Shown one piece after another: positions 12,656 to 64,000 of a stretch of 64,000 bases of DNA. The notes beneath the pieces were generated by a model. The model saw only the letters and a list, made by a program, of their open reading frames with translations. It did no database searches and was not told the DNA's origin. The number at the start of each line of letters is the position of its first letter. The first letter of the stretch is position 1. The position numbers and the translations under genes are program-made. Origin of the DNA: Dicyema japonicum (Eukaryota > Animalia > Dicyemida); assembly GCA_011109175.1 (NCBI GenBank), contig RDEW01000001.1:245343-309342 (forward strand), read 5' to 3'.

Positions 12656-12699
12656 ATTTTTGATTGAGGTGGTGACGTGCCTCTCTTGCACCTATGTCT

Positions 12700-29300: not shown

Positions 29301-32300
29301 CTTTCCATTTTCTATATATTAGTAATATCAGTACGTGAATGTACCCCAAGGTTTGTTACTTTTTGTACATTCGCACTCTCGGATGTTTTGCAGCTTAAAA
29401 ATGTTGAATTTACGAAATTCACTTCACATCGATGGTTCCCCAATCTTACTGAGATTTCGGAGCTATTTCCAAGACCTTCTCCACCAATGCTCAGTTCAGT
29501 TCCTCCAAAGATGGACCCACCAGTTGGGAACATTGACGTAATCTTAAACACATAAATCAAGTTGTATTGGCTGAGTCTTAATTTTCAAAACGAATACTTG
29601 TTGATTACTCCGTTTCGGGTTTTTGCCTCAAAAGAATAATTTCCGGGAGACAAAGACGGAGTAAGGAAATAGTAAGAGTAATTAGAGCAGGAAGACTGGT
29701 TGATTTCAACGTTGTTTATATTCAAGACTACAGTTTCATTTCCACATAGCAAATTACTTATATTGAGTGTTAATGTTTGACTCCCTTGGCTGAATAAAAA
29801 ACGCCAACCTGCGACACTAAGATGAGTAGGATGCACCCCCGAAACCATGGGAGTTGTCGAATCTTCGTAAACAATAATTCCAGCGTGATAGAATCTGTTT
29901 AAATTAAATAACGAAATTCTGTATATTCCAATGGACTATTAAATCGTTAAAATTTGGATACGTTTTGGATTGGGGTCACAAACGTCATTCTGTACATTGA
30001 CCTCCTTACAATCACCGCGGACTTTGAATCGACAAGGATCGTCATGTTTGCTTGGAACCCGAAGCCATTGATAGTCAAATATTCACCCCCTAAGTATAAC
30101 AGATTTAGCCACCATTGATGGAACTAACATTCCTGGAGATGTTGGTAACAGATATTTGAGGATTTAGACAAAACTCTTGGGCCAATCTGGCGTATCCGAT
30201 AGGGTCTACCAATACGGAAACGTTGCAGAGGACGTTTATGTCATTTCGAATACTTAACGAACAGTTTATTTCGTTGGGGGAAGATTGAAATGGCACACAG
30301 TCGTTCCCACCAAGCAGAATAGTATTTGATGATAAATTTGCGCTGAATAGAGTCCCTCGTAGTGTTATGTTAGTTTCGGGATTTTGTACTAAACATGATC
30401 AGTTAGTAAACTCGAAAGAGGCTCAATTGAGGTGACTGTTGGTGTAGACATGTTAGCTACTGAAAAAGAACAATTCCCAGAGCAAAGGGAAGGAGATTCG
30501 TTTATTATAACCTCAACTTGTGGCTCGGAAAACTTTTGTCTTACCATTGATTGTGGAATATACGTACGAAGGTGACCGTCAGCCACTAAATAGTGGGATA
30601 TTTGAATTCGATCATTTGATGTGTTCACCTAAAAATTCATTTGACGAATGTGACCTGAATCGATTCGGCATTCCCCTTCTACGACAGGAGAGCTATGTAA
30701 TACCGAGAATTTTCGCAGTTGGAGTACCCAGATACGTACAGTATCCCAATGTCGGGGAAATATTCCAAGACACTTTTCATGTTGGTCGCATTCAGTTGAG
30801 CTTTAATATCTCAGAAATGCTACTGTATAAGGGAATGTCGCAATACTCCCATGTAGTATGGTTCAAGTCAATGTAGCACCAAGGACCTAAGGGTTTTCCG
30901 TCGGGATTTCTGCAGAAATTATATTCTTGCCATTTACTAAAAGGCTCAACCTGAAGAATTCCATTTCTGGCATTTAAATCCGTTTTTCGTAACTGAAGTA
31001 GTCCCAGCATAATTTGTCTCCGCTACAGTGACTTTACAGTCGACGACTAAATCACGTTTATAACATTCCAATAACCTTCTGAGGCTTTGATAGTCTTCCT
31101 GTTGAAAGTGAATACTAGATCTCCTTCAGAGGGGGAGCTCATATTTGAAATTTTTTGACAGTATGGAAAATTTTGATTATTTGATATCTACGAATCACTC
31201 TATATCGCTGAGAACCATAGCAGGGGGAATATTTCCGAAGCAGTAATTCAACTGATAAGTCACGTTGAGATGATTTAAAAATTTTGAAACGCTTATACGA
31301 CGTACGGAATATTTACTCGGGGGAAGCACTCTCTGATTGGTCAAAATTGCTGAATCAATTAAATCAAAAAACATATTTTATCCGTATTTCTGCGAGTAGT
31401 GCTTAGAGAAACGAGATCATAATAGACCAGTCCCGTGTTAATCACTTCCGCCAACTTTACAAGGACGATCGACGACTGGACGTCACTCATCAGCTGTACA
31501 AGGTCAACACACTCGTAATTCCATTCCCTTTAAAGTGACAAGTCCCATATCAAACAATATTGAATCTTGTAGGGATAAATTGTATGTATTCGAGGAATAG
31601 GTTTTCCCGTCCGTAGAATATACGATATACAAGGAATTTGGGGGATATCCGTTGTAGGCAAAACACAGCTTGTTATAGAAGATTATAATTACCATTTTGA
31701 ACGTTACTATGTTGGGTTTGTTTCTCAAAGCTTCGAAATTTAAAATCTCAATTAGGTTTTTATTAGAGTGTCCCCCACAGAATGCGTTACCAAAGTAGTT
31801 ATCGGAAGTTTCAAAGTCCTCCACGAAAAATACTGAATTTGACAATTTATCGAAATCTTTAGGACACCGAATTTCATAGGCCTTCATGAGTTGTTTCTCA
31901 ATCTAATCATTAAGCAAGCGATACCTTGCTGGTATTAAAATTTAAAGAAATTGGCGGTAAGTTGTAATTTTCGCTTTTTAATAGCAAATAGTAACTCCCA
32001 GAAGTTCCATTAGCTATTTTATTGAGAAAATAGTGTGAGACAGACTCGTTTACACTCAAAAAAGAGAGTGACGTGGAATCACCTATAATAATCTAAAAAC
32101 AAACCCGGATGTATCGTGAAATGTAAAACGAAGTTTGTAGTGTTTTCAGTATTCGTATAGTTCTCTACATTTACAAGGTAATCCCCCAAGATTGGGTGTT
32201 GGTCAACTTTGGCTTGTAGAAGCTGTGACGTGTCGCTGCTTTTTAAAATTTCTAGTGTAAGCTCACTCTCAACCCGTTTCAACGCTATTGAAGCTTATTC

Positions 32301-34146
32301 GGTATTCCGCATTGGTCTTATTTTTATAAATCCGCACTCCGATGAGATCCCCAAGTGGGGACACTAATTGGTTGGGAAAGAAGCAACTCTACCCTGTAAG
32401 TTAGGTAATACATGTTGCTCTGGAATGTAGTAATAATTCATGCTAATAATCTGCTTTTCTGGGACAACCAATGGGAGGGAGATCCATTAATATGGGGATT
32501 CGAAAAGTTTGAAATCCACGCGGCAAGTGGACTCCCCGTTGTATTTTTTGAGTATAGTTATGTAATATCTTAACGTAAGTGATATCACAACCCTCTGTCT
32601 TTGAGCAAATAAAATCTCTTAAATGTATATTGGTCGCAGATTGTGACCTATGAGTGAGTACTTTGTACTGAATCAGTAAATTTGAAGCAAAATAAAGTCA
32701 AGGACTTGTCGTTCATGTCAAATTGATAGTGTCCACTTTTTGGTGGACGGAATATTCCCGATAGTCTGATACTCATGTCTCCCGTAGGAAGTTTTATGTT
32801 TCCAGACAATCCTCTAATCCTCCCATAGCCAGCATCCGCGGAAGTGTTGTTCTGTATCTCCCTTAAACTGGAAAAATTCGAAGAGGAGTTCCAATATTCT
32901 AACAGGAATCCTCGACTCCCTAAAATATCAAGGTTCAAGAAAACCGGAATAGAAGGTTCCGTTAAAGTCCTTATCCGCCTTACAAACAATTTTATGCTTA
33001 TTGATGGATCTTATCGTGCATGTTCTCCCTGCATAAGTTATACATAGCGATTCAACCCCCAACTAAAGCGACAGTGCTGTCATTGTAAAAGTTACGACCA
33101 AATATCGTCGAAATAGTACCTCCCTGTTGACTGCCCAAATTGGGGGTGATTCATGTTATTTCTACAATTAGGAATGCAGTAAACCCGCGTATGCCTCATA
33201 CTGTCCGTATTTCAGATTATTGAATAGCATTACTGACTGAGAAATCGATCTGATTGTGAAATCTTAAACAAACCTCCCATAGTTTCTGTCAATAATTACA
33301 CTCCCGTTGATTCCCCCAATCCTGACATTCGAAAGTTTACATTTGAACTTCCCATTGGTTGGGGAAGTCAAATTAAAGTCATATCTATGTTACCGATAAA
33401 ACTACGGTTCATTGGTAGTCTGATTCACAACTTCGCAGGTTTCACCCCCAAAATATATTCTAGCATTAAAAATGACTTCAACCTCGTAAATTTCGGTTTG
33501 ACTTCATTAGAGACTCCGACTTTATTGTTCAAATAAATCGTAGAGTAAAATATCCCAGTGACGGTGATGAGTTGGTCTGAAAACATTATACGACTCAACC
33601 TGGGGGAACCGTTTGAGGATCTATTTGAGTGATCTTGGGAGTGCAGTACGACCGAGTCTTGAAATCAAATTTCAAATTACAAAGAACATGCACCTACTTG
33701 CTGATTTGTCTCGGCAAATTTGATTACTCGGTATTCTTACTCCGTCCACGTGCACCAAAATGTTATAGTTCCCATAAGGCATGGTTCTAAACTGTGTGAC
33801 TTGAGTTACTCAGTGAAGCAGAATATTGCCTTGCTGTGCGTTAAATCTGTGCGGATGTTGCATTTGTAAGATTAGGTCGAGGTGTACAGGTAAACCACGT
33901 TCTCTTTGGTGTTCTGACCCCCAATATTCAACGTGAACGCTTCATCAGAGAACCTCAACTAAGTAATGGATCAAACCGTCCCCTGTTATTTCTATCAAAG
34001 TTTCTCCAGCAATGGACCCACATCGAGGATAGATGTGATCGACGTGGGGGGTTACTTTGTTTACCAAATCGAATACAATTTTGAGCGCAGGATAATATCA
34101 AAAGTGTGAATAAAGAAAGATCCCTTGGGCTCATATATTCTTGCAT
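20338..34146 (-). pseudogene. PKHD1L1: Fibrocystin-L (PKHD1L1-like) gene: IPT/TIG repeats, PA14, kringle, two G8 + beta-helix modules, C-terminal TM; many disruptions
   Basis: Signal peptide then IPT (HVDHIYPRCGSIAGETLIEITG); repeated P..GS..GGT..I.G.GF; G8 (WSSRFTWGG..P.AGEIVVIP..ILLDV); GQAFRLGRYPIHFH, FFLEDGIET, NPSDCVDMDCDG, HGWCNGYTCQLRISTFYAIV; TM LILGISLGSVAFVGIASAVIW. Many 22-27 nt GT-AG introns. In-frame TAG at 26876 and TGA at 20464 plus many frameshifts. Identity is confident; pseudogene status is less so. Confidence 0.85.
30830..31045 (-). other. Kringle domain inside the PKHD1L1-like gene
   Basis: [18 protein letters not shown]..(frameshift)..[36 protein letters not shown] matches the kringle consensus. 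Confidence 0.9.
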
Positions 34147-38699: not shown

Positions 38700-39115
38700 T
38701 CTTGTTGCTGGTAATCATTAGAACGTCATCCAGGTTATATGCTGTTACCAAGTTAAGACCGATTGTTTCGTAATCATCTTTTAAGCAAATTGGTAGTGTA
38801 TTTCTGGGTCTGCCTCGAAATCCGTTACTTCCGGCGCAGTAGAAATATTCTTCATTATCCTGTTACACGGCGTAGTCGCGTCCAGACAAAAAAATGTCGA
38901 ATTAGTTGTTATCTCGATAGAATGAAGTCCATGCTAATTGGAGTAGATTTACATGGAGCAGATTGTTACTCGTTTGAGATTTTTCTCGAAGAGAAGGTTT
39001 TAGTCAGTATACGTAGTTGGCTTCTGTGGCAAGTATATAGCCTCTCTAAATCGTTTTTGAGGTTGCCCGTGTTCCGGAATTGTATATTAGTATTGGCTGG
39101 ATAAACGTGTTTTTT
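38700..39115 (-). mobile_element. RTE LINE 3' fragment (inverted)
   Basis: Minus strand: IQPILIYNSGT.. and GFRGRPRNTLPICLK. Confidence 0.7.
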
Positions 39116-39124
39116 GGTGAGGTG

Positions 39125-41995
39125 GTGAAGATTCTCTGTGACGATCTGGAGAGATACGACGCATCTATTGGGTGCCTACAAGAGACGAAAGTTACTTGTA
39201 GCCTTGATGATAACTATGGCGAATTTCGAATTATATGTAAGTCGAGCGACTTAAAACATTATGAATTTGTCATACACTCAAAGTTGACAAGTGTAGTCTA
39301 CCGTATATGGAGTGTGAATGAAAGGATCTGTGTTATACAAATCCGACTAAACGACTTACCTCATTCGAAGTGCTTTCTGACAATTGTAAATGTTTATGCA
39401 CACACTGCGGGCGAGTAGCATAAGATCCGACAGAACAAGACGACTTCTATTCAACACTGTTACGGACGTACAACGAATATGATTCGTCATCACTAATACT
39501 CATTGCTCGGGATTTGAATGCAAAAATCGGGATGAAGAATAACCCGGATGATGTTTTCTTGGGAGAAGATGAACGTGGAATAAGAAACCTATCCGCGACA
39601 ATACTTGGTCACTTTTGTAAACCAAACAACCTTTTCCTATGCAATACTGCATTTACGCATCCATCCACAAAACTACGTAAATGAGAAAGAGAAGGAACTC
39701 AGAGAGAATGCTAGTCCCAATACACAACCGAATAGATTATGTCATTTGCCGGACTAAAGACAAACACCTTCTAGTAAACGCTCATTCATATGAAGGCTCG
39801 ACGACTGTCAACGACCACAAGATAGTTATTGCAACCATTACCCTGAATAAACATGCCAGCAAATACATGAATTTCAAAAATCACGAATTTGAGAAAATCA
39901 GAGGCGATTACGCGACTGAAAGGCTGATTTCCCAACCGGAGAATACTGAGAGATATCAACAATACATTCAGACTCATTTGCAGGACGTATTAGTGGATAC
40001 CACGTTAAAAGACGCCTGGAAATGCACAAAGGACATCATCAACGAAGCTGCTGAAGCATGTTTTGGCAAAAGAGAAAATAGTAAAATGCACCTAAAGAAA
40101 ATTCATCCAGATGTTCCTGAACTTACGAAAAGTCTAAAAGAAATATAAATGAAAAAATCAAATGCCTCTGACTAATAAGATAAAAGCCCTTCAAGGCGAA
40201 TGCAACGTGCCAGAAGAAAAATAAAGGGTCTGAACAAGAAGCTTTTCATAGAAGAAATAGCTTCCTGTATAGAAGAAGTGAACAAAGTGAAAGACAACGC
40301 ACAGGTGTACGTCGCTGCCCGTTTGCTGCGGCGAACAAACCGAAGTAGACTACCATAAAAGACGAGAACGGTAAGCTGATACTGAACACCAAAGAACAAA
40401 ATGAAGCCATCGCGGCTCACTTTGAGAAGCTTTTCAACATCGAAACCATAGAAATCCACCCATTTGATGGAAGACCAAGACCCCTGGAAATACCAATCAC
40501 GGCCGATAAAATTAAAACGGCCTGCCGAAAACTCAAGAATAACAGAACCCCGGACCAGATGTGATAAACCCAGAATTACTGAAATACGGCACTGACCTCC
40601 TTTTTTAAAAAATCGCTACACTACAAATTGAAATGTTTTCAACTAACTTAACTCCACCTCAGGGTAAGGAACAACTAATCCCAATACAAAATACCAACAA
40701 AAACAGAGGACAGCTCGAAAATTTGCGACCCATCATACTCTAAATTCATCACGCAAAGTCTTGGCAAACATTGTGCTTTAACGAATAAAAGGATCTGCTT
40801 ACAAATACCTACCAGATAGTCAAATTGGTTTTCGAGAAGGGAGATATACAGCTGATGCGGTCTGGAGTCACAGATGTAGGTGTGCAACATATCAAAGATT
40901 CCGTAACGCCACCAATATCGTGGGAATTGACCGATCAAGTGCTTTTGATACAGTTAATAGGAACAAATTAATGGGGTACTGAGCGGATTTCTTGATGAGT
41001 CGAGTATAAGGATGACTCGAATTCTACTTTCTAACACTGAGCTCTTTGTGAGAGTTGAAAGACCTATTGAAGAAAAAAAGAAACAAACACGGGCACTTTA
41101 CAAGAAGACTTTTTTTCCTCTACTATTCACAATTTATTTGGAAGCCGCTATGAGGGAACTTAGAGCGCTATACAAAGGAAAGACGGAAGAAGTAATCTAC
41201 GCAGACGATTTAGACCTAATTTCTGAAGACGTAAAAGTTTTGGAAAACCTATTAGAAAAAGCACTAGATGTACTAGGGAAATGGTTTCTACTGTGAACAG
41301 AGAGAAAACAGAAATCACAGAGATAAGAAGGATGAGCAACGTCCTAGAAGAGAAGTGGTGACAAGTAAAGAAACTCGGTTCACTTTTGGGAGATAGCGAA
41401 GATACTAGCCAATGCTGTGTTATATAAACTAAAGAATCTATGGCTCAATCAAAAAGGCATCGACACGAAAATGAGAATCCTATTATACGACTCATTCATA
41501 AAACCCGTACTTTTATATAAAGCTGGAACTTGGGCGACCTCATCAGCGGATGTGGAAAAACTCGACTCGTTCCACGAGGTCAGCTGCGAAAAAAAACAGG
41601 AATTACTTGGCCTACGAGAATATTGAGGAATGCTTTATATAAGAGATGCAGCACTAGACCTATCACTTAGAAGTACTGGAATCCCGATGGAACCTCTTCG
41701 GACAGGTGCTGATGATTGAATTAACATCCCCTCCTAACATATCGATGGAAACATACCATGTTAGTCAACAAGGCCGCTATCGTGGAAGACCAAGAACAAT
41801 ACTGCAAAAAGTCTTACAAAAAGACATGGTCAATATCAAAAAAATCTAATAAATGCCGACGATCTGGACATCATGAGAGCCTTGGCTAAAAACAGGTGAG
41901 CATCGTAGAAGAATGACATCTAACCTTGTTTCTTTTGCTGAACATGCGGGGCTATAATTAGTATGGCTCTCGTGAAGTGCTTAAATACATAATAA
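39125..41995 (+). mobile_element. Near full-length degenerate RTE-clade LINE
   Basis: CLQETK, VNVYAH, NRIDYV, VNDHKIV, PLLFTIYLE, IYADD, KPVLLYKAGTW, RGRPRT; many stops and frameshifts; paralogous to 12700-14755. Confidence 0.9.
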
Positions 41996-42304
41996 GCGTG
42001 TCGTATAGTTTGACAAGAAAGTTTCACTGATAAATTACTCTTTCTTATCCAGATATTGTACATTTTTGAAGTATATAGTGGCCAAGATTTTCCTTGGACT
42101 AATATCCTCAGCGTCACCTACTGAGCCGAGTTTTTTTGTATGTCTACAGATTCGTCAATCTTGATTTGGGTCGTTCAAATCGTGTGTAGTCAGTTTTTGT
42201 AAACGTTTGACTATATATTATTATAGATATTAAATAAAAAAAATAAAAAAATCATGTTAAAAATTTAAATAAAATAAAAATTGACCTAATAAAATTTAGA
42301 TTAC

Positions 42305-42710
42305 ATGAACAGAACTATTAATTTATCATATTTATTCTGTTAAGCAAAATCGTCAAAATAAAATGCAATCGGAATTATTTATTAATTGATACATATGTAA
42401 TATATAAGAATCCTTCTATAGTATATATTTCATTAACTTAAGGAATATCCGTTATTTTGGTTAAAATGGAATATACATGTAGATAACTGGAAAACTTATA
42501 GAACGTATGGTTTTTTTCAATATAATATAAATTTTACAGTTATTCCACACTTTTACAGTGAGTTTTATACTATTGACTTTATAACAGAAATTGATTATGG
42601 TACGCTTTTTGTTATACTAAGGTGGTAAACGTTATATGTTATACTAAGGTGGTATACGTTATACGTTATACAATATTTATACTATTGACTTTATAACAGA
42701 AATTGAACAC
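42305..42710 (+). pseudogene. Truncated, divergent 5' cassette of the LAMP-like array gene (copy A1)
   Basis: Same upstream AT block and signal-peptide exon as 46230, but exon 2 reads EYPLFWLKWNIHVDNWKTYRTYGFFQYNINFTVIPHFYSE. Ends in short local duplications at about 42610-42710. Confidence 0.75.
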
Positions 42711-45887: not shown

Positions 45888-46229
45888 TTTCCGAGAAAGT
45901 ACACTGTGTGAATGATTTTTTATGAGTAGTCGAGCAATTTCAACTTATTTTTTCCGTAACTAAGACTCATAATAATTTATGTAGAGTTTTTTCTAGTAAA
46001 AATAATTAATTTTTTAACGACTAGAAATAAAAAATAGTAATAAATTCAGTTCCAAATAGAAGTTTTCGATATTTTTGGCAGAGATCCGAAAAAGTGTTCC
46101 AAAAAAAGAAGTGTTCCAGCCCCGAGGTCCGTTCAAATCGACGACAGACTATATTAAATAATAATTAAATAAAAAAATAAATTAATAATTTAAATAAAAT
46201 AAAATTTGACCTAATAAAAATTAGAATAA
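45888..46229. promoter_or_regulatory. Putative bidirectional promoter between gene B and the LAMP-like gene (repeated at about 52034-52372, 55571-55920, 60211-60554)
   Basis: About 340 bp between divergent starts, conserved in all four units; duplicated aaaagtgttcca motif and an AT block before the ATG. Confidence 0.4.
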
Positions 46230-47544
46230 ATGAACAGAATTATTCATTTTGTCATATTTATTCTGTTAAGCCAAATCGTCAAAATAAAATGCAGAGAGAG
46301 GAGATATATCTTAATTGATTCATATGTAATTTATAAGAATCCTTCTAAAGTATATATTTCGATAACTTTAGCAATATCCTTTATTTCAGTTAAATAAGGA
46401 ACTAACAATAGATGGCATTAATGGTAAGTATATTCTATCTGATAAAAATATAAGTTTAAAATTTATTCTACACTTTTACAATGAGTTTTATACTATTGAC
46501 TTAATAACAGAAATTGTGTATGGTATGTTTTTCGTTGTACTTTAGGTGGTAAGCGTTATACTAATATCACAACGATTTCTAAAACAAAATATGGGGAATA
46601 CTACCGATGTGGTTATGCTTATATTATTTTTTCGGATAATATATCTCTTACATTTTATTTAATCAAATTGCAATATCACGATAAAAGTAATTTGTATTAT
46701 TTTACTGGAAAAGGTTTTTATCAAAATTTATTTAGCTAATGACTGTAACCCAAATAATGACCCAAATACGCCGATTTGGTTTTTATTTAACAAAAATAAA
46801 ATCCGAGCAGTAATAAGTGGAAATATCAAAATATCATATATTGACAATAACAAAATTGTACACTTTTGCATTGATTCTTAGATAACAGATGAGCATTTCA
46901 GTGATTATTACTATAATTTTTAACACGTGTTGTTAATCGAATCCATAAATATCTTTTGATTGGAGCAAATTCTAAAATATATATTACGGTGGATAAACTA
47001 GATAAAAAATATATTATTTATAACTTTTATGTTTGTGTTGGGCATGAAAAATCTAAATGCGTTTTACTTGAAAAGCAATTTAAACAAATTAAAATGGGAG
47101 GATATTATCAATGTGGACTCATCTCACAAAACTATAAAAATGTGACTATCGAAATTTCATCTCTTAAATTACAATTTTTCCGCAATGATCTGAGTTTTGA
47201 ATTTATTGGAGATGGTAAATAATTCCGGCTGAATTTTAGATGAAGGATGCTTTGAAGAACAAATATCGAATGAAATTAAAGATAAAAAAAACATTTTTAA
47301 ACATCGTAATAAAACCGACTAAATTTTAGATGAAATAAGTTTTGAAGAACTAATATCTTCTGAAAGTACATTTGTAAAAAAACTGACGAAACATCAAATA
47401 ATTGGAATCGTATGTGGAGTTGTCGGACTACTGTTGTCATTGATTCTATTTATAATACTTACTGCAGTCATTGCCAATATTTATATCAAAATGAAATCCC
47501 GTAATGAATCACTCTTCACTGAGCCATTCCTTAAGTTAAGCTAA
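46230..47544 (+). CDS. Two-domain LAMP-like type-I membrane glycoprotein, copy A2 (six micro-introns; one 1-bp deletion at about 46920)
   Basis: MNRIIHFVIFILLSQIVKIKC signal; introns of 22, 23, 22, 24, 25 and 24 nt; repeated motif KYGEYYRC..LQYHD..FTGK|ANDC and KMGGYYQC..LKLQFF..FIGD|DEGC; TM IIGIVCGVVGLLLSLILFIILTAVIANIYI; tail KMKSRNESLFTEPFLKLS*. Confidence 0.7.
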
Positions 47545-48189
47545 TTATGATTCTCTTTCGGTTAAATTGGGTTAATGGTTTAATTTACTTAAATAATCAC
47601 TTATCAATTCTCATGATGGCAGCTGAGATTCAACAATTATCGTGGTCCACGGCCAGATATTTTCTTTAACTTGATTCCAGTTCTCTTACTTGATTCGATT
47701 TCATAAAATTTTTTTTACATTAATATACAAAATTAAAATTAGATTTTATAAATTTCATAGGACGTTATTCTCTTTTAATCTACTATTTTTAAGATAATAT
47801 TTCAAATGAAACGAATGGTTATTTAGTAGCTTGATAGAGATGCTAATAATATAGGCTTAGTAGACTATTTCATGCTGCACGCTTGGCGTATATAAAATAT
47901 CCAGCTGCAAACTTTAAAATTTATTTTTAAGAAGTTGAAATTATTTAGAAGTAATCTGCTGAATTGATTGAATGGTGACGATATCTCTATTGAACTATGT
48001 CTTATTCTTATTCTTTGGTAACTTTCAACTGCAGAGGACTTAAACAACCTCACAAGAACTACCAACTGATATGCGATTTAGCCACAAGTAAAGGATAGAA
48101 CCTGGCCTATGAATATCTCTAATGTAAACCTTCATAATAAATCAAAATCGACGTGAGGTCAGATGATATTTTTAATTAAGACATTCCAA

Positions 48190-48440
48190 TGACCAAGTCC
48201 TTCAAATTTCGTAATAGTCAACTACTTCGCACACAAAAGTGACTGATTTCCCGTAAGACCAAGAACATACTTCCGACTATCTTGAACAAGACCTATCGAC
48301 TATCCACGCCCAAAATCCTAAAATCACTCTTGTATCGTTGACACAAGGCACATATCCACCAGTGGGACCAAACAGCATCTGCAATGCGAGAGTCCCTTTC
48401 TGAACCCACTCTGTCCCGGCTTCAAAAATTAATAAACATA
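48190..48440 (+). mobile_element. RTE LINE 3' fragment within the repeat arm (inverted copy about 49822-50015)
   Basis: R.RPRT.LPTILNKDL-like remnant ending in an A-rich tail. Confidence 0.55.
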
Positions 48441-50719
48441 AAAAGATATCAGACTAAGAAATATCAAAGATTGTATTTTCCTCAATATTCCCATAATGTC
48501 ACAGGTCTTAGATTTTTTATCGCTCCCTTGTTTTTTTCTGGTTTATGCTGAAAAATCAAAATTCCATCAGCAAGTTTCAAGGGAGAATGTGTCTCAAATA
48601 CTTTCAAGGGAGAATGTGAAGTGACAAACTTAGGAGGTTGAAATGGAGAAAATCCTTGCTGTCAATATTTTCCGTTCTCTATTGAGGCTTTGCACAATTC
48701 ACTCACTCATAGATAAATTAACAGTTTCGTAAGCGTATAACCCATTTAGAAATGATGGAAGTTGTAAAAATGTGTGATTTCAGGAGGAAGAATTTTTCCT
48801 GAGTTCATGGTTTCAAGAGCAAGGGTCGTCTCAGGTTTATTCTTTTCAGTGACGGAAGTATTAAGGATTTCTTCCATATTCGTGGAATTTTGTATTTGCA
48901 TATCGAGTGGCTTAAAATTGGGTTATTGACTCAATTGTGTGGACCTGAATGCTTCAACTTCTCTATGTAGATATTATCTTCCTGGTATAACGTTTTCTTT
49001 ATAAAATTGGTCGTAGATAACACATGTTCAGTCAATGGAACTGCTTGTCCGGCCATTTATACATTCTTCAAAACTTATAGTAAGGGTTGTGGCTTATACT
49101 CTTTAGTCTATTTCTCTCCTTAATGAGGACTATTGTTTCAGAGCCGAATTTCTTGAAAAAAAACATATTGAGCGATACAGAATAACTTAAGCTCAAAATC
49201 AAACGGCCACGTTTTTTAAGGGGTGAGTTTATCCAACCTGACCAGTAGAGACAATCTTCAATGAAGTACAAAAGCCCAATCTATAAAAGCCCAAACTACA
49301 AAGCCCGAACTACAAAAGCCCAATCCTTCTGAACATGTTACACTGGATCATCAGGGATACTTGAATTGATCTCAAACTGAAAGACTTCTGATCTGGATCC
49401 CAAAATTTCCCATTATATTTGTCGCGGACTGTCTATGTCACTGCATTGAAAAGGCATTCGATTCGGACGATTCTAAGAAATGGGTACGATTATTTTATTT
49501 CCCATTAACGCTATACATACCCCGTATGAGGTGGAACGAAGAGAATTCACTTATGTCATTAGTAGAGAAGAAGGTCCACACATTCTTCTAACGAAACCTA
49601 TTGTAGACTCCGAAGAGTTCACCTACAACTCCCAAAACCATGTGAATCCGACACAGACAATCTCGGACACTTAGAGAGAGAGAGGTGCGATCCTTTGAAA
49701 GCTTTTGATTTTTCAGCATAAACCAGAAAAAAACAAGGGAGCGATAAAAAATCTAAGACCTGTGACATTATGGGAATATTGAGGAAAATACAATCTTTGA
49801 TATTTCTTAGTCTGATATCTTTTTATGTTTATTAATTTTTGAAGCCGGGACAGAGTGGGTTCAGAAAGGGACTCTCGCATTGCAGATGCTGTTTGGTCCC
49901 ACTGGTGGATATGTGCCTTGTGTCAACGATACAAGAGTGATTTTTAGGATTTTGGGCGTGGATAGTCGATAGGTCTTGTTCAAGATAGTCGGAAGTATGT
50001 TCTTGGTCTTCCGTGAAATCCGTCACTTTTGTGTTCGAAGTAGTTGACTATTACGAAATTTGAAGGACTTGGTCATTGGAATGTCTTAATTAAAAATATC
50101 ATCTGACCTCACGTCGATTTTGATTTATTATGAAGGTTTACATTAGAGATATTCATAGGCCAGGTTCTATCCTTTATTGTGGCTAGGTCGCATATCAGTT
50201 GGTAGTTCTTGTGAGGTTGTTTAAGTCCTCTGCAATTGAAAGTTACCAAAGAATTAGAATAAGACATAGTTCAATAGAGATATCGTCACCATTCAATCAA
50301 TTCAGCACATTACTTCTAAATAATTTCACCTTCTTAAAAATAAATATTAAGGTTTGCAGCTGGATATTTTATTTACGCCAAGTGTGCAGCATGAAAAAGT
50401 CTACTAAGCCTATATTATTAGCATCTCTATCAAGCTACTGAATAACCATTCGTTTCATTTGAAATATTATCTTAAAAATAGTAGATTAAAAGAGAATAAC
50501 GTCCTATGAAATTTATAAAATCTAATTTTAATTTTGTATATTAATGTAAAAAAAATTTTATGAAATCGAATCAAGTAAGAGAACTGGAATCAAGTTAAAG
50601 AAAATATCTGGCCGTGGACCACGATAATTGTTGAATCTCAGCTGCCATCATGAGAATTGATAAGTGATTATTTAAGTAAATTAAACCATTAACCCAATTT
50701 AACCGAAAGAGAATCATAA

Positions 50720-52033
50720 TTAGCTTAACTTAAGGAATGGCTCAGTGAAGAGTGATTCATTACGGGATTTCATTTTGATATAAATATTGGCAATGACTGC
50801 AGTAAGTATTATAAATAGAATCAATGACAACAGTAGTCCGACAACTCCACATACGATTCCAATTATTTGATGTTTCGTCAGTTTTTTTACAAATGTACTT
50901 TCAGAAGATATTAGTTCTTCAAAACTTATTTCATCTAAAATTTAGTCGGTTTTATTACGATGTTTAAATATGTTTTTTTTGTCTTTAATTTCATTCGATA
51001 TTTGTTCTTCAAAGCATCCTTCATCTAAAATTCAGCCGAATTTATTTACCTTCTCCAATAAATTCAAAATTCAGATCATTGCGGAAAAATTGTAATTTAA
51101 GAGATGAAATTTCGATAGTCACATTTTTATAGTTTTGTGAAATGAGTCCACATTTATAATATCCTCCCATTTTAATTTGTTTAAATTGCTTTTCAAGTAA
51201 AACACATTTAGATTTTTTATGTCCAACACAAACATAAAAGTTATAAATAATATATTTTTTATCTAGTTTTTCCACCGTAATAAATATTTTAGAATTTGCA
51301 CCAATCAAAAGATATTTATGGATTCCATTAACAACACTTGTTGAAAAATTACCGTGATTATAATTGAAATGCTCGTCTGTTATCTAAGAATCAATGCAAA
51401 CGTGTACAGTTTCGTTATTGTCAATATATAATATTTTGATAATTCCACTTATTACTGCTCCGATTCTATTTTTGTTAAATAAAAACCAAATCTGCGTATC
51501 TGGGTCATTTTTTGGGTTACAGTCGTTAGCTAGATAAATTTTAATAAAAACCTTTTCCAGTAAAATGATACAAATGACTTTTATCGTGATATTGCAATTT
51601 GATTGAATAAAATGTAACAGATATATTATTCGAAAAACTAATATAAGCATAACTACATCTGTAGTATTCCCCATATTTAGTTTTAGAAATCGTTGTGATA
51701 TTAGTATAACGCTTACCTCCTAAAGTACAACGAAAAACATACCATAAGCAATTTCTGTTATTAAGTCAATAGTATAAAACTCATTGTAAAAGTGTAGAAT
51801 AAATTTAAAACTTATATGTTTATCAAAAAATATACTTACCATTAATGCCATTTAATGTTAGATCCTCAGTTAACTGAAATAAAGGATATTGCTAAAGTTA
51901 TCTAAATATATACTTTAGAAGGATTTTTAAAAATTATATATGAATCAATTAAGATATATCTCCTCTCTCTGCATTTTATTTTGACGATTTGGCTTAACAG
52001 AATAAATATGACAAAATGAATAATTCTGTTCAT
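50720..52033 (-). CDS. LAMP-like gene copy A3 (2-bp deletion at about 51825)
   Basis: Inverted copy of A2; ORFs 51042-51308 and 51384-51674 are identical to those of A5. Confidence 0.65.
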
Positions 52034-52372
52034 TTATTCTAATTTTTATTAGGTCAAATTTTATTTTATTTAAATTATTAATTAATTTTTTTTTTAATTA
52101 TTATTAAATATAGTCTGTCGTCGATTTGAAACTGACCTCGGGGCTGGAACACCAGTTTTTGGAACACTTTTTCGGATCTCTGCCAAAAATATCGAAAACT
52201 TCGATTTGGAACAAAATTTATTACTATTTTTTATTTCTAGTCGTTAAAAAATTAATTTTTTACTAGAAAAAACTCTTCATAAATTATTATGAGTCTTAGT
52301 TACGGAAAAAATAAGTTGAAATTGCTCGACTACTCCTAAAAAATCATTCACACAAAGTACTTTTTCGGAAAT

Positions 52373-52951
52373 ATGAAACCAGCATTGGCACAATAACTCG
52401 AATAAAAAAACAAATATGCCGTACATAACCCGTGGGAACATTATATGAATTCTGTTTGTACTTATAACAAAAGTTCAATGTGCAGAATAATTTGAATTCA
52501 CGAATGTGTTGCTAGAGAGTTTACATTGAACCAGCTGCCGTAGAAACAAAAAGACCCACAGTAGTTATTTACGATAGCATAAATTCTCTAAGAATGAAAA
52601 TTGTCCATCTAACAAACTTCTCATTCAATTTTTCCTTTCTCCTTGACAAATCAGCAATCAGGAATATTGACTAAGGTTTCTATGCCCTCTGTGATGTAGA
52701 ATCCTATTATATCAAGAATCTGTCGAAACGCGTAAATAAAGAAAGAAATCCACGTCTCTTAAATTCTGCTAAAAAAGGAGCGTCTTGGCCCACGTATCAG
52801 TGATAAGTTAAGATTCTCAATTTGCGTGCTGAAATAGCATGCGATTGAGCTGGAATCCAAGATGCATACTCGTCCCTTAATTTTATGTGCATCACCTCAT
52901 CGCAACGACAATTGGATATTATGTTTTATACCAGGCATATCTAAGGATTTT
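52373..52951 (+). pseudogene. 5' fragment of gene B ending at a fold-back junction
   Basis: Reverse complement of 45304-45887; switches abruptly at about 52952 to sequence matching 43247 onward. Confidence 0.6.
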
Positions 52952-55900
52952 TAGAAGTCTGCTCTTGTGAAGGATGTAAAATCTCCGGATTGACATACCT
53001 CGAGTTTAAAAGATAATGCAGCTGCATCATGAAGCAGGATGTTTTGAGAACAATTACAGAAAACGTGAGATTGTTACTTAATGCTGAAATCCATTTAAAG
53101 CAATCAAAGAGCATGCCCTGTCCATTTATAATTACCACATTGGCTTAATTGAACCGATCGACTCTATTGATGTTGCAATGGTATTTTACCTGAATATTGT
53201 ATTTATTTTTGTTAAACTTGGGAGAGGTGTTTATTTTAATTTTTCATAAAATTGATGTATGTTGTTTCAATGTCTGGTGATTTGATAAGAAAGTCCAGAA
53301 TTTGTCTAGAAAAAATGGAATCCTGCGGGTCTTTAAAAATAAGAAAACATATATGACAACATTTGCAAGATTCCTTGCTTTCAAAGACATGATGGACAAC
53401 CCAAGTAAGCTTTAGCGCTATCAAGAATATGAAAAATCTTCTACGGATAGTTTCAGAAAGTCAACTTATCCAATACTTATGATTGTTGCGAATAAGAAAA
53501 TATTTATGTATTTGGATCTTCTGAGTGGTCTGTGGAAACAATATATTTTCTTCTTCAAGGAGGTGCATATATTTGAACGAAACAGAATGTACGACATCAA
53601 GAAGTCAGAGACTTAAGACAAATTCTGTCAATTTCATAATCTATTTTCTGAGTCGATTTCCCGGTGGACACATCCATAAAGACAGATACTCATATCAGGC
53701 TCAATAGAACTCGCGTTTAGGTGGTGAATAAAATTATACTTTTTGAAATTACTTCTCAAGAACAGCTCTTGACTTTTTACTAGAGTGACATCATGTGATC
53801 TACATGTCAGGTAACGCCCGTGCCAAACTGGCACTAAAAAGGATTATTTGTTCTCTCCCACTCCAATCATTAGGTTTCCTCAACTCAAGAAATGTATGTC
53901 TTTAACTATTATGGTTGGTTCACATGGACTCTTGGACGTTATTACCTATTTCTCTAATCACGTAAAAAGATGCATCATGTAGAACCGTTCTGGGAACGTT
54001 AATATATAAGAACGACAATAATGTTTAATCATTTGAGTTAACTTCTCAACTTTTTTTTAATTAAATCGATATTATTATTGAGCATATGAATTGGAGAGTA
54101 GAGTCCCACAGGGATCAATTATGAGACATCTATTATTTAACGTTCTAATCTGTTTCAGATGTCATCAAGTATGAAATCTCTTATATAAGTAACTACTACA
54201 ACTGTCTGATCTGTCGAGATTGGGTGTGACTCGGAGAAAAGAAACAATGTAAATGTGAAAGAAATTGAGTCTCGTTTGGTCTCCAATTGAAAAGTTCAGA
54301 AAAAAATCTAATGCAAGATTTTCAGCGGAAATGGAGACGGAATCAGCAAGGCTCCCTATGTGGAATCGATAGTATGGAATGCCTAAGTATCTCGGAACAG
54401 CTTTTGAAAAACTGAAACTGCTTAATAAAACTTTAAACTCAGAAAGAAAATAGCACACCAGACTCGAAACGGATATTTTCATTTTTTAATTACGGTCATT
54501 CTATCACTTCTCTATGGACTTGAAGAGTGCTATTACACTGCATACAAGGAGTGTTTTATCTTCCTTCTTGAAAACCTAGGATAACAGGGATCAAGATTGT
54601 CACAAGCGGCTTACGAGACTTTATATGATGACGAAGATTTGCTATTAGTGTCGATAAGAGAAGTAACAGAGAAAAAAATGGCAAACTCGGATAGGGGATG
54701 TCATCATTGACTCGTATGTCCAAACGGAATGAACCATAGAGGGGTTAAGGTCGCAGTAGGAGAGTCCAAGCTATTGCAGGACTTGTGGTAAGAAACCTAA
54801 AATAATACATTCTTTACATTTTTTTAATAAAATTTGCTAAAGTTAAAAGAAGGTTGAAGCTCATGAACGTCTTCTGACTAAGTAGAAATTGCACAACCAC
54901 TACCTGTTGATATTACTTCATTGACAAAAATCCACTGTTTTCTCTAGTGGTTTCATTTTAATGACGAGGTCCCCCACAATGTCGTCTACTGTATAAAAAT
55001 CCTTAGATATGCCTGGTATAAAACATAATATCCAATTGTCTTTGCGATGAGGTGATGCACATAAAATTAAGGGACGCGTTTGCATCTTGGGTTTATTCCT
55101 GCTTATTCGCATTTTATTTCAGCACGCCGATTTGAGAAACCTAGACTTATCACTGTTACGTCGGCCACGACGCTCCTCTTTCGGCAGAATTTAAGAGACG
55201 TGGGTTTATTTCTTAATTTGCGCGTTACGACAGATTCTTGATATAATAGGATTCTACATCAAAGAGGGCGAAGAAACCATATTCACTATTTCTGATTGCA
55301 GATTTGTCAAAGAGAAAAAAAGAATTGAGTGAGAAGTTTGTTGGATGGACAATTTTCATTCTTAGAGAATTTATGATATCGTAATTAATTCCTGTGGGTT
55401 TTTTAGTTTTTACAGCAGCTGGTTCAATATGAACTCTATAGCAACACATTCGTGAATTCATATTATTCTGCAAATTAAAGTTTTATAATAAGTTCAAACA
55501 GAATTCATATAATGTTCCCATGGGTTATGTAAAGCATATTTGTTTTTTTATTCGAGTTATTGTGCCGATGATGTTTTAAATTTTCGAGAAAGTACTGTGT
55601 GAATGATTTTTCAGGAGTAGTCGAGCAATTTCAACTTTTTTTTCCGTAACTAAGACTCATAATAATTTATGTAGAGTTTTTTTATTTAAAAATAATTAAT
55701 TTTTTAACCACTAGAAATAAAAAATAGTAATAAATTTTGTTCCAAATCGACATTTTAGATATTTTTGGCAGAGATCCGAAAAAGTGTTTTAAAAACTGAT
55801 ATGTTCCAGCCCCGAGGTCTGTTTCAAATCTACGACAGACTATATTTAATAATAATTAAATAAAAAAATTAATTAATAATTTAAATAAAATAAAATTTGA

Positions 55901-57893
55901 CCTAATAAAAATTAAATTAAATGAACAGAATTATTCATTTTGTCATATTTATTCTGTTAAGCAAAATCGTCAAAATAAAATGCAGAAAGAGATATATCTT
56001 AATTGATTCATATATAATTTAAGAATCCTTCTATAGTATATATTTCGATAACTTTAGCAATATCCTTTATTTCAGTTAACTGAAAATCTAACATTAATGG
56101 CATTAATGGTAAGTATATTATATCTGATAAAATATAAGTTTTAAATTTATTCTACACTTTTACAATGAGTTTTATACTATTGACTTAATAACAGAAATTG
56201 TTTATGGTATGTTTTTCGTTGTACATTAGGTGGTAAGCGTTATACTAATAAAACAACGATATCTAAAACTAAATATGGGGAATACTACCGATGTGGTTAT
56301 GCTTATATTAGTTTTTCGAATAATATATCTGTTACATTTTATTTAATAAAGTTGCAATATCACGATAAAAATCATTTGTATTATTTTAATCGAAAAGGTT
56401 TTTATTAATATTTATCTAGCTAATGATTGTAACCCAAAAAATTACCCAAATACACCGATTTGGTTTTTATATATCGAAAATAAAATCAAAGCAGTAATAA
56501 GTGGAAATATCAAAATATCATATATTGTCAATAACGAAATTGTACACTTTTGCATTGATTCTTAGATAACAGATGAGCATTTCATTATCATTACGATAAT
56601 TTTTAACACATGTTGTTAATCGAATCCATAAATATATTTTGATTGGTGGAAATTCTAAAATATTTATTACGGTGGAAAAACTAGATAAAAAATATGTTAT
56701 TAATAACTTTTATGTTTGTGTTGGGCATGAAAAATCTAAATGCGTTTTACTTGAAAAGCAATTTAAACAAATTAAAATGGGAGGATATTATCAATGTGGA
56801 CTCATCTCACAAAACTATAAAAATGTGACTATCGAAATTTCATCTCTTAAATTACAATTTTTCCGCAATGATCTGAGTTTTGAATTTATTGGAGATGGTA
56901 AATAAATCCGGCTGAATTTTAGATGAAGGATGCTTTGAAGAACCAACATCGAATGAAATTAAAGACAAAAAAAACATATTTAAACATCGTAATAAAACCG
57001 ACTAAATTTTAGATGAAATAAGTTTTGAAGAACTAATATCTTCTGAAAGTACATTTGTAAAAAAACTGACGAAACATCAAATAATTGGAATCGTATGTGG
57101 AGTTGTCGGACTACTGTTGTCATTGATTCTATTTATAATACTTACTGCAGTCATTGCCAATATTTTTATCAAAATGAAATCCCGTAATGAATCACTCTTC
57201 ACTGAGCCATTCCTTAAGTTAAGCTAATTATGATTCTCTTTCGGTTAAATTGGGTTAATGGTTTAATTTACTTAAATAATCACTTATCAATTCTCATGAT
57301 GGCAGCTGAGATTCAACAATTATCGTGGTCCACGGCCAGATATTTTCTTTAACTTGATTCCAGTTCTCTTACTTGATTCGATTTCATAAAATTTTTTTTA
57401 CATTAATATACAAAATTAAAATTAGATTTTATAAATTTCATAGGACGTTATTCTCTTTTAATCTCTATTTTTAAGATAATATTTCAAATGAAACGAATGG
57501 TTATTCAGTAGCTTGATAGAGATGCTAATAATATAGGCTTAGTAGACTATTTCATGCTGCACGCTTGGCGTAAATAAAATATCCAGCTGCAAACTTTAAA
57601 ATTAATTTTTAAGAAGCTGAAATTATTTAGAAGTAATGTGCTGAATTGATTGAATGGTGACGATATCTCTATTGAACAATGTCTTATTCTATTCTTTGGT
57701 AACTTTCAATTGCAGAGGACTTAAACAACCTCACAAGAACTACCAACTGATATGCGATTTAGCCACAAGAAAAGGATAGAACCTGGCCTATGAATATCTC
57801 TAATGTAAACCTTCATAATAAATCAAAATCGACGTGAGGTCAGATGATATTTTTAATTAAGACATTCCAATGACCAAGTCCTTCAAATTTCGT
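52952..57893 (+). repeat. Direct duplication of about 43247-48212 (gene B minus-strand copy 52952-55570 + A4 + 3' flank)
   Basis: Paired ORFs offset by about 9.7 kb (e.g. 43927/53634, 46956/56639). Confidence 0.93.
55921..57227 (+). CDS. LAMP-like gene copy A4 (several small indels)
   Basis: Same exon/intron layout as A2; shares the A2-type variants CVGHEK, YYQC, LSFEFIGD. Confidence 0.6.
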
Positions 57894-58895
57894 CCTTCAA
57901 ATTTATGTTATCGTAAATAACTCCTCTGGGTCTTTTTGTTTCTACGGCCGCTGGTTCAATGTAAACTCTCTAGCAACACATTCGTGAATTCAAATTATTC
58001 TGCACATTGAACTTTTGTTATAAGTACAAACAGAATTCAAGGAATGATCTTCGTTTTATTACATTCAACACAAAGCTGATCAACTACACAGGCATACACA
58101 GCTTGTATAGTCACACAACAATTTCATTACAAAGATTTTCAATAAAGTATTTGAGACACATTCTCCCTTGAAACTTGCTGATGGAATTTTGATTTTTCAG
58201 CATAAACCAGAAAAAAACAAGGGAGCGATAAAAAATCTAATGTCTTAATTAAAAATTGAAATGTCTTAATTAAAAATATCATCTGACCTCACGTCGATTT
58301 TGATTTATTATGAAGGTTTACATTAGAGATATTCATAGGCCAGGTTCTATCCTTTCTTGTGGCTATCGCATATCAGTTGGTAGTTCTTGTGAGGTTGTTT
58401 AAGTCCTCTGCAATTGAAAGTTACCAAAGAATAGAATAAGACATTGTTCAATAGAGATATCGTCACCATTCAATCAATTCAGCACATTACTTCTAAATAA
58501 TTTCAGCTTCTTAAAAATTAATTTTAAAGTTTGCAGCTGGATATTTTATTTACGCCAAGTGTGCAGCATGAAAAGTCTACTAAGCCTATATTATTAGCAT
58601 CTCTATCAAGCTACTGAATAACCATTCGTTTCATTTGAAATATTATCTTAAAAATAGTAGATTAAAAGAGAATAACGTCCTATGAAATTTATAAAATCTA
58701 ATTTTAATTTTGTATATTAATGTAAAAAAAATTTTATGAAATCGAATCAAGTAAGAGAACTGGAATCAAGTTAAAGAAAATATCTGGCCGTGGACCACGA
58801 TAATTGTTGAATCTCAGCTGCCATCATGAGAATTGATAAGTGATTATTTAAGTAAATTAAACCATTAACCCAATTTAACCGAAAGAGAATCATAA

Positions 58896-60210
58896 TTAGC
58901 TTAACTTAAGGAATGGCTCAGTGAAGAGTGATTCATTACGGGATTTCATTTTGATATAAATATTGGCAATGACTGCAGTAAGTATTATAAATAGAATCAA
59001 TGACAACAGTAGTCCGACAACTCCACATACGATTCCAATTATTTGATGTTTCGTCAGTTTTTTTACAAATGTACTTTCAGAAGATATTAGTTCTTCAAAA
59101 CTTATTTCATCTAAAATTTAGTCGGTTTTATTACGATGTTTAAATATGTTTTTTTTGTCTTTAATTTCATTCGATATTTGTTCTTCAAAGCATCCTTCAT
59201 CTAAAATTCAGCCGAATTTATTTACCTTCTCCAATAAATTCAAAATTCAGATCATTGCGGAAAAATTGTAATTTAAGAGATGAAATTTCGATAGTCACAT
59301 TTTTATAGTTTTGTGAAATGAGTCCACATTTATAATATCCTCCCATTTTAATTTGTTTAAATTGCTTTTCAAGTAAAACACATTTAGATTTTTTATGTCC
59401 AACACAAACATAAAAGTTATAAATAATATATTTTTTATCTAGTTTTTCCACCGTAATAAATATTTTAGAATTTGCACCAATCAAAAGATATTTATGGATT
59501 CCATTAACAACACTTGTTGAAAAATTACCGTGATTATAATTGAAATGCTCGTCTGTTATCTAAGAATCAATGCAAACGTGTACAGTTTCGTTATTGTCAA
59601 TATATAATATTTTGATAATTCCACTTATTACTGCTCCGATTCTATTTTTGTTAAATAAAAACCAAATCTGCGTATCTGGGTCATTTTTTGGGTTACAGTC
59701 GTTAGCTAGATAAATTTTAATAAAAACCTTTTCCAGTAAAATGATACAAATGACTTTTATCGTGATATTGCAATTTGATTGAATAAAATGTAACAGATAT
59801 ATTATTCGAAAAACTAATATAAGCATAACTACATCTGTAGTATTCCCCATATTTAGTTTTAGAAATCGTTGTGATATTAGTATAACGCTTACCTCCTAAA
59901 GTACAACGAAAAACATACCATAAGCAATTTCTGTTATTAAGTCAATAGTATAAAACTCATTGTAAAAGTGTAGAATAAATTTAAAACTTATATGTTTATC
60001 AGAAAAAATATACTTACCATTAATGCCAATTAATGTTAGATCCTCAGTTAACTGAAATAAAGGATATTCTAAAGTTATCGAAATATATACTTTAGAAGGA
60101 TTCTTATAAATTACATATGAATCAATTAAGATATATCTCCTCTCTCTGCATTTTATTTTGACGATTTTGCTTAACAGAATAAATATGACAAAATGAATAC
60201 ATCTGTTCAT
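58896..60210 (-). CDS. LAMP-like gene copy A5 (best preserved; open from ATG to stop if intron 1 is retained)
   Basis: Hand translation is continuous through five spliced introns (23, 22, 24, 25, 24 nt) to ..EPFLKLS*. A 1-bp loss after intron 1 makes retention of that intron in-frame. Confidence 0.75.
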
Positions 60211-63697: not shown

Positions 63698-64000
63698 TGT
63701 TCATTTTCTGTTATAAAGTCAATAGTATAAATATTGTATAACGTATAACGTATACCACCTTAGTATAACATATAACGTTTACCACCTTAGTATAACAAAA
63801 AGCGTACCATAATCAATTTCTGTTATAAAGTCAATAGTATAAAACTCACTGTAAAAGTGTGGAATAAGTGTAAAATTTATATTATATTGAAAAAAACCAT
63901 ACGTTCTATAAGTTTTCCAGTAATCTACATGTGTATTCCAATTTAACCACAATAACGGATATTCCTAAAGTTAATGAAATATATACTTTAGAAGGATTCT
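63698..64000 (-). pseudogene. Truncated divergent 5' cassette of the LAMP-like gene (copy A6, partial)
   Basis: Reads EYPLLWLNWNTHVDYWKTYRTYGFFQYNINFTLIPHFYSE; same breakpoint duplications as A1. Confidence 0.75.

Follow-up and report, generated by a model that had tools for sequence, protein, structure and literature searches.

A multicopy family of probable LAMP-derived membrane proteins with micro-introns in the octopus kidney parasite Dicyema japonicum

Gene copies and predicted protein architecture in the window

Dicyema japonicum is a parasite of the octopus kidney with a body of about 30 cells, and its genome is among the most reduced in animals. In a stretch of 64,000 nucleotides (nt) of this genome (assembly GCA_011109175.1, contig RDEW01000001.1, positions 245,343 to 309,342, forward strand; referred to as the window), we analysed four copies, A to D, of a gene family predicted to encode two-domain membrane proteins which are very probably derived from the lysosome-associated membrane proteins (LAMPs). 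The published genome comprises 67.5 Mb on 377 scaffolds with 5,012 genes, 49% repeats, a mean intron length of 38 bp and a heterozygosity of 1.24% (PMC6736024); the assembly totals 67,542,437 bases in 377 contigs. All searches were run per exon or per natural open reading frame (ORF), while a joined model of 391 amino acids (aa) was used for counting and alignment. Splicing, expression and surface location were deduced from the DNA sequence.

The four copies are arranged in nested inverted duplications and are mutually 95-99% identical. Most pairs differ by 58-64 substitutions, B and D merely by 8, and due to this small difference B and D could be alleles which were placed side by side by the assembly. 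The following features were determined:

46230-47544, plus strand: copy A, 7 exons and 6 micro-introns, assembled with a 1-nt deletion in a T-run of exon 5
50720-52033, minus strand: copy B, inverted compared to A, assembled with a 2-nt deletion in a T-run of exon 2
55921-57227, plus strand: copy C, several 1-2 nt deletions in the assembly, pseudogene or uncorrected reads
58896-60210, minus strand: copy D, 8 substitutions from B, assembled with 1 nt missing where exon 2 begins
42407-64000: segmental duplications, nested and inverted as well as direct, in units of 2.9-5.8 kb with 94-98% identity, carrying the genes and common flanking DNA
42227-42636, plus strand: 5' fragment from a different lineage of the family, comprising exons 1-2 and 96.6% identical to locus L012 and about 81% to the window copies
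63771-64000, minus strand: opposite-strand counterpart of this fragment, truncated by the end of the window

The 5' fragment (42227-42700) terminates in short local tandem duplications and is found on both arms of a large inverted repeat.

The first-pass annotation of this DNA had proposed that six introns of 22-25 nt join short ORFs to a protein of about 390 aa. This was borne out on the level of the DNA, as the GT/AG ends are kept in the copies and the canonical exon sizes result in a predicted model of 391 aa with a signal peptide, two homologous domains, a transmembrane segment and an 18-aa tail:

46230-46349, plus strand: exon 1, signal peptide (predicted by hydropathy) and start of LAMP domain 1
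46350-46371 (22 nt), 46523-46545 (23 nt) and 46714-46735 (22 nt), plus strand: introns 1-3 of copy A, GT..AG
46372-46522, plus strand: exon 2, hypervariable patch of domain 1
46546-46713, plus strand: exon 3, C-terminal half of domain 1 (G.YY.C ... KLQ ... F.G)
46736-46857, plus strand: exon 4, the Cys that closes domain 1, a short linker of Asn and Pro and the first strands of domain 2
46858-46881 (24 nt), 47215-47239 (25 nt) and 47306-47329 (24 nt), plus strand: introns 4-6 of copy A, GT..AG
59226-59559, minus strand: exon 5 (given for copy D), bulk of LAMP domain 2, predicted all-beta and LAMP-like, containing the other hypervariable patch and an additional pair of Cys
47215-47396, plus strand: intron 5 with exon 6 and intron 6 with the start of exon 7, tandem duplicates of a unit of about 91 nt, stalk
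47330-47544, plus strand: exon 7, stalk, long transmembrane segment (about 30 residues) and 18-aa tail that lacks a Tyr or dileucine signal

The phases of introns 1-6 are 0, 1, 1, 0, 1 and 1. The predicted introns are not chance readings, because the GT/AG ends of introns 1-5 are retained in 27-30 of the 30 genomic copies, the intron interiors diverge more slowly (p=0.12) than synonymous sites (0.165), nine copies have a stop-free ectodomain under a single exon model, and a subfamily with an identity of 28-31% (BLASTP E 1e-25 to 1e-31) comprises the first five introns with identical phases. Introns below 30 nt are a known trait of D. japonicum (PMC13644364), and therefore the micro-introns are no novelty in themselves.

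Hydropathy of the predicted spliced model showed an N-terminal hydrophobic core, a single transmembrane segment and the short tail of 18 aa, i.e. the topology of a type I protein. The two domains, described as repeated in the first-pass annotation, are homologous to each other (HHalign probability 95.7, E 1e-8), and introns 3 and 5 are located at the equivalent site in both, three codons ahead of the closing cysteine. The domain motifs quoted there are present in copies B and D. Each domain comprises only the second cysteine pair known from LAMPs, at about 112/150 in domain 1 and 265/302 in domain 2, while domain 2 of the window subfamily shows an extra pair on adjacent strands at about 239/247. 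The ectodomain has 5 N-sequons in the window copies and 4-6 in intact copies, and the domains are separated by a linker of about 9 residues.

Intron 6 apparently originates from a tandem duplication of intron 5 together with the following exon start, and the number of these units differs among copies. Region 47215-47396 represents an apparent intron gain via a duplicated intron-exon unit. A retention of intron 6 would end translation ahead of the transmembrane segment and lead to a secreted form.

Upstream of copy A (46150-46229), and also upstream of B and D, a conserved AT-rich block of 78 nt was observed, which terminates in a sequence resembling a branch point and acceptor, TGACCTAAT...TTAG, 5 bases before the ATG. 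This site may be the acceptor of a trans-splicing reaction or of an intron in the 5' untranslated region; its AG is missing in copy C. A literature search for spliced-leader trans-splicing in dicyemids, which would bear on this site, yielded no paper.

Relationship to LAMPs

The lumenal domain of LAMPs is characterised by a length of 150-200 aa and a beta-prism fold (PMC3409847). An AlphaFold model was built for window exon 5, which covers 111 aa of the about 150 aa of domain 2, on the basis of 41 family exons (predicted local distance difference test, pLDDT, 79; predicted template modelling score, pTM, 0.71); the first strands of the domain lie outside the model. LAMPs came first in three structure searches with modest scores. 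In Foldseek, ranks 1-4 were LAMP-3, LAMP-3, LAMP-1 and LAMP-2 (TMq 0.50-0.57, E 0.02-0.15), VIA showed LAMP-2 with Z 7.1 and LAMP-3 with Z 6.7 (root-mean-square deviation, rmsd, 3.5-3.8; 101 of the 111 residues aligned), and rows 1-2 of the Atlas structure search were LAMP3 clusters with a TM score of 0.6. This model replaced an earlier one from 25 sequences (pLDDT 54), for which LAMP-3 was first in Foldseek and tied in VIA. Domain 1 is connected to the LAMP fold through its HHalign match to domain 2. The assignment of the fold is based on the agreement of the methods and not on any single score. A comparison with AlphaFold and Foldseek, for the spliced protein, had been suggested by the first-pass annotation, and its claim of LAMP-fold proteins agrees with the structure searches as well as with the matches of relatives, the language-model features and the conventional Dicyema LAMPs described below.

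When the whole genome was scanned with PF01299, the six top matches were all divergent members of the family. In hmmscan, 13 of 41 members matched PF01299, the best with an E of 1.8e-4 and 19 bits compared to a cut-off of 27.2 bits, while Pfam searches with single window exons gave no informative match. Atlas language-model features, determined for the natural read-through ORF of a relative (L081), were assigned to LAMP clusters with a value of 0.92 and 10 of 10 concordant families; the same feature search with window exon 5 led to no usable match. In L081 (C112:456882) an ORF of 178 aa continues in frame across the last intron. A phmmer search of exon 5 against 1.84 billion representatives gave a single match to an RCC1 repeat, which was rejected as spurious. 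No match was obtained in sequence searches of the PDB with profiles. The searches for homologous proteins gave no relative as well, which says little, since they were limited to proteins of similar length.

A genome search with PF21222 revealed four conventional single-domain LAMP genes, one of them over the cut-off, and a single-copy gene of the V-ATPase accessory subunit Ac45 was found separately:

C1:1194900-1198200 (L088): two conventional LAMP genes in tandem
C279:430250-432200 (L089): conventional LAMP
C1:1439600-1441500 (L090): conventional LAMP
C345:1103438-1103554 (L091): Ac45/ATP6AP1, accessory subunit of the V-ATPase, single-copy gene with a PF20520 match over the cut-off (E 8e-8)

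The conventional LAMPs comprise a Thr/Pro-rich segment, a LAMP domain, a transmembrane segment with the motif P-I-x-V-G and the YxxPhi tails YEEV, YEPL, YEEL and YQEI; one of them matches PF01299 weakly (E 0.018). The family profile matched a conventional Dicyema LAMP exon with up to 35.9 bits and left the Ac45 locus unmatched, and window exon 3 alone matched one conventional LAMP at a genome-wide E of 1.4e-4. Furthermore, the last intron is common to the family and the conventional LAMPs, in phase 1 and three codons ahead of the terminal Cys. Sequence and intron position thus both point to a common descent with bona fide LAMP genes. For human LAMP2, introns are documented at c.183+, c.741+, c.864+ and c.928+ (PMC5420071, PMC10821070). 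The phases of these documented introns are compatible with the phase pattern of the family. Additional LAMP2 introns are presumably located at c.397, c.556 and c.1093.

Compared to LAMP-1 and LAMP-2 (PF01299 and PF21222; PDB 5GV0, 5GV3), which were among the top structural matches, the window family has the signal peptide, the two tandem LAMP domains, the transmembrane segment, the short tail and the second, C-terminal disulfide of each domain in common. In contrast, the first disulfide, the GYxxPhi signal and the proline of the transmembrane segment are missing. Glycines are present in this segment, and a PF21222 search with it gave no match, whereas the conserved form would comprise one Pro and two Gly. 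The linker of about 9 residues stands against a Pro-rich, O-glycosylated hinge of about 30 aa in LAMP-1/LAMP-2, and no Pro/Thr hinge or mucin segment was found in the window copies. The few N-sequons, which differ from the heavy N-glycosylation of LAMPs, the stalk between domain 2 and the transmembrane segment and the new Cys pair of domain 2 are further differences of the window family from LAMP-1/LAMP-2. LAMP-1/2 form a glycocalyx, and LAMP genes are few in animals, with five in humans (PMC3409847); the copy number of more than 100 in the Dicyema family contrasts with these about five LAMPs.

LAMP-3 (DC-LAMP; PDB 4AKM), the best Foldseek match of the exon-5 model, belongs with CD68 to a type which, like the conventional Dicyema LAMPs, is present in low copy and comprises a Thr/Pro-rich mucin segment followed by a single LAMP domain, the canonical transmembrane segment with P-I-x-V-G and a tail with YxxPhi. 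The conventional Dicyema LAMPs have the motif K(A/L)QFFR..D...F.G, the position of the last intron and the loss of the first Cys in common with the family. The loss of the first disulfide claimed by the first-pass annotation was found in the window copies, but has to be refined, as the N-terminal cysteine of this pair is missing in all four conventional Dicyema LAMPs too. Altogether, the data support a homology of the window proteins to LAMPs, both in fold and by descent. They are classed as a LAMP-derived family, as the full set of two disulfides per domain, YxxPhi, the transmembrane motif and heavy glycosylation are all absent.

Family size, variation and coding integrity

With a profile of exon 5 (150 of 242 candidates scored) at least 149 genome matches were obtained, and a search with exon 3 gave 137. 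Allowing for split hits, the family comprises at least about 125 loci on dozens of scaffolds, a number corresponding to about 2.5% of the 5,012 annotated D. japonicum genes. The expansion in a parasite, as suggested by the first-pass annotation, holds on the level of the genome, with the correction that the window copies are 95-99% identical and inverted instead of head-to-tail. A 420-aa open frame on contig C268, considered as an intronless retrocopy, was rejected, as it represents an N gap.

The tails form a series from conventional YxxPhi via a large subfamily with Y-x-P-Phi-Phi or E-x-x-P-Phi-Phi and a degenerate ESIPL to the window type, which has neither a Tyr nor a dileucine signal and follows a transmembrane segment of about 30 residues. 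The (G)YxxPhi signal is missing in the window copies, while the sister subfamily and the conventional LAMPs keep it in a form lacking the Gly. Accordingly, the apparent loss of the tyrosine sorting signal, which the first-pass annotation had ascribed to these proteins, is specific to the window subfamily, because the large sister subfamily keeps a C-terminal YxxPhi. Near-identical ectodomains bear either tail type (L006 compared to B and D), and in the mosaic locus L015 domain 1 is 98.8% identical to L018 and domain 2 98% to L010. Judged by these identities, domains and tails are shuffled between copies. In another locus (L061, C24:679156-682320) the 3' half of the gene is tandemly repeated. 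In the dispersed copies the similarity begins sharply about 78 nt upstream of the ATG, while the 3' edges vary.

The amino-acid variation is clustered in two patches, which span approximately residues 41-65 and 196-235 (p<0.0002 in a permutation test). Each patch lies directly 3' of the phase-0 intron of its domain, the patches match between the domains, and in an approximate structural alignment that of domain 2 corresponds to the S3-L2-S4-S5 region of LAMP-3. The ratio of nonsynonymous to synonymous substitution rates (omega) was 0.82, 1.51, 1.00, 1.08 and 1.03 for exons 1-5 and about 0.93-1.0 overall; only the value of exon 2 differs from 1 (likelihood-ratio test, p=0.004, uncorrected). Since omega is close to 1 outside exon 2, an average purifying selection on the amino acids is not demonstrated. 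Nonetheless, only 2 nonsense codons were observed compared to about 68 expected under neutrality from the tree length, a roughly calculated depletion of about 30-fold, and in-frame (3n) indels are common to several copies, while cysteines and splice sites are near-invariant. An omega of about 1 together with strongly depleted stops and invariant cysteines fits a constrained framework with diversifying patches, and relaxed selection may also account for it.

In the assembly, each of the four window copies shows a 1-2 nt exonic deletion (several in C), and 16 of 27 copies carry a frame-breaking indel in exons 1-5. Over the 27 copies, about 54 of these indels are deletions and 4 insertions, with about two thirds in homopolymers. 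Due to this dominance of deletions and homopolymers, most frame breaks are probably errors of unpolished long reads, whereas copy C and the fragments may be true pseudogenes. The four sequencing runs used behave as DNA, with no intron-skipping joints. Short-read contigs from all four runs contain the base that copy D lacks, and they disagree with several bases found only in D. Since paralogous contigs with 88% likeness also align at copy D, this correction is supportive, but no proof.

Apart from the family, several other elements were observed by eye from the ORF list of the window:

20600-33000 (approximate), minus strand: large gene with micro-introns, similar to fibrocystin-L/PKHD1L1 and containing IPT/TIG, G8-like and beta-helix-like segments
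5780-7874, minus strand: exons of an acetyltransferase of the CBP/p300 type (bromodomain, histone acetyltransferase, ZZ/TAZ-like)
1242-3422, 12660-14553 and 39080-41296: endonuclease/reverse transcriptase ORFs of the long interspersed nuclear element (LINE) type, at least two families

Possible location and role of the family

We consider it on balance probable that the window subfamily consists of LAMP-derived type I proteins which form a variable, surface-displayed repertoire. Type I proteins with a long transmembrane segment and no sorting signal reach the plasma membrane according to established trafficking rules. The duplicated two-domain lineage would have been free to diversify, because the conventional LAMPs apparently still cover the lysosomal role. 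In the window subfamily the sorting signal would then have been lost, and a longer transmembrane segment and a stalk built from repeats would have been gained. With the signal lost and the transmembrane segment long, the default destination would therefore be the plasma membrane, where two compact beta-prism domains would be displayed. Their exposed patches would vary through point mutation, in-frame indels and gene conversion, and new copies would arise via segmental, often inverted, duplication in a birth-and-death evolution. The result could be a polymorphic surface coat, or a repertoire for binding, exposed to the octopus kidney with its renal epithelium, urine components and host immune lectins. 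Host recognition and adhesion, uptake from urine and immune evasion are candidate roles.

Several points weigh against such a surface repertoire. Location, splicing and expression alike are read from DNA, and the window tail may comprise a non-canonical sorting signal. The fold scores are each sub-significant and originate from a partial domain of 111 aa. Furthermore, the exon-2 omega test can be inflated by recombination, the other exons show an omega of 0.76-1.13, which is not significantly below 1, and all four window copies are frame-broken in the assembly.

An alternative would be an expanded endo-lysosomal membrane family lining the large endocytic/lysosomal system by which dicyemids take up host urine, with the window tail sorted by a non-canonical signal or together with paralogs that bear a signal. 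This is in accordance with the C-terminal YxxPhi and/or ExxP-Phi-Phi of the sister subfamily, with the endocytosis genes known as expansions of the D. japonicum genome (PMC6736024) and with the normally lysosomal occurrence of the LAMP fold (PMC3409847). However, four conventional LAMPs with YxxPhi exist separately, the few N-sequons and the missing Pro/Thr hinge are unlike a protective glycocalyx, and hypervariable patches with domain shuffling are hard to reconcile with a lumenal coat, so that we regard this explanation as rather unlikely. Mostly inert copies, which were passively amplified in the segmental duplications of a repeat-rich genome and drift neutrally, would account for the overall omega of about 0.93-1.0, the 16 frame-broken copies and the occurrence of truncated fragments. 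Such a drift appears improbable in view of the 30-fold depletion of nonsense changes, the near-invariant splice sites and cysteines and the in-frame indels common to several copies, while the indel pattern is that expected of unpolished long reads and the short reads contradict the assembled frame break of copy D.

A descent from Ac45/ATP6AP1 instead of LAMP would be conceivable from the structure searches, as its lumenal domain (PF05827/PF20520) has the same fold with a C-terminal Cys before the transmembrane segment, ranks 3-4 in VIA are taken by V-ATPase chains, probably Ac45 (Z 6.5 and 6.0), with scores on a par with those of the LAMPs, and row 4 of the Atlas structure search is an Ac45 cluster. 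It is very improbable nonetheless, since there is no sequence link: neither the transmembrane motif of PF20520 nor the lumenal domain PF05827 was found in the family, PF20520 matches the separate single-copy gene, and the family profile matches the conventional LAMPs and not this locus. PF01299 is the recurring Pfam match, whereas PF05827 gave no candidates, which is uninformative alone. A glycoprotein borne by a virus or transposon, or a chance reading of AT-rich DNA, is hardly credible either. The common sharp 5' edge of dispersed copies about 78 nt upstream of the ATG and the LINE-like ORFs in the window could hint at mobility, but the spliceosomal introns are common to a host gene, and the connection to LAMP practically refutes this reading. 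A viral origin was rejected, as no structural match to viral proteins was obtained (best E 0.08, rmsd 14), and a mobile element with fixed ends was rejected as well, as only the 5' edge is common and the variable 3' edges share no terminus.

To our knowledge, the cephalopod host has no adaptive immunity. In its most far-reaching form, which we put forward only tentatively and as doubtful, the surface-repertoire reading assumes that a lysosomal scaffold was turned into a recombining variant surface repertoire of more than 100 members, with subfamilies graded from lysosome-targeted to surface-displayed and two exposed patches that diversify, and that this repertoire mediates host specificity or an escape from the innate immune defence of cephalopods. 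In this reading, its expression might be restricted to certain stages or cells. As a functional analogy among parasites, the variant surface families VSG, VSP and SRS are likewise large multigene families with hypervariable ectodomain patches, gene conversion and a conserved anchor end. Their fold is unrelated, however, and the present DNA data give no sign of mono-allelic expression or switching in the Dicyema family.

A LAMP-derived family is not named among the multicopy clusters in the main text of the genome paper (PMC6736024), the accessible part of its supplements contains no mention of LAMP, and our literature search revealed no report of a LAMP expansion in any parasite. That the annotation missed the family is plausibly explained by the micro-introns, repeat masking and assembly indels. 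For the LAMP family in general, the findings suggest that the beta-prism is usable as a scaffold for variable patches, a possibility raised for its flexible loops before (PMC3409847). For dicyemids, the family provides concrete candidates for the molecules of host attachment, host specificity and nutrient uptake.

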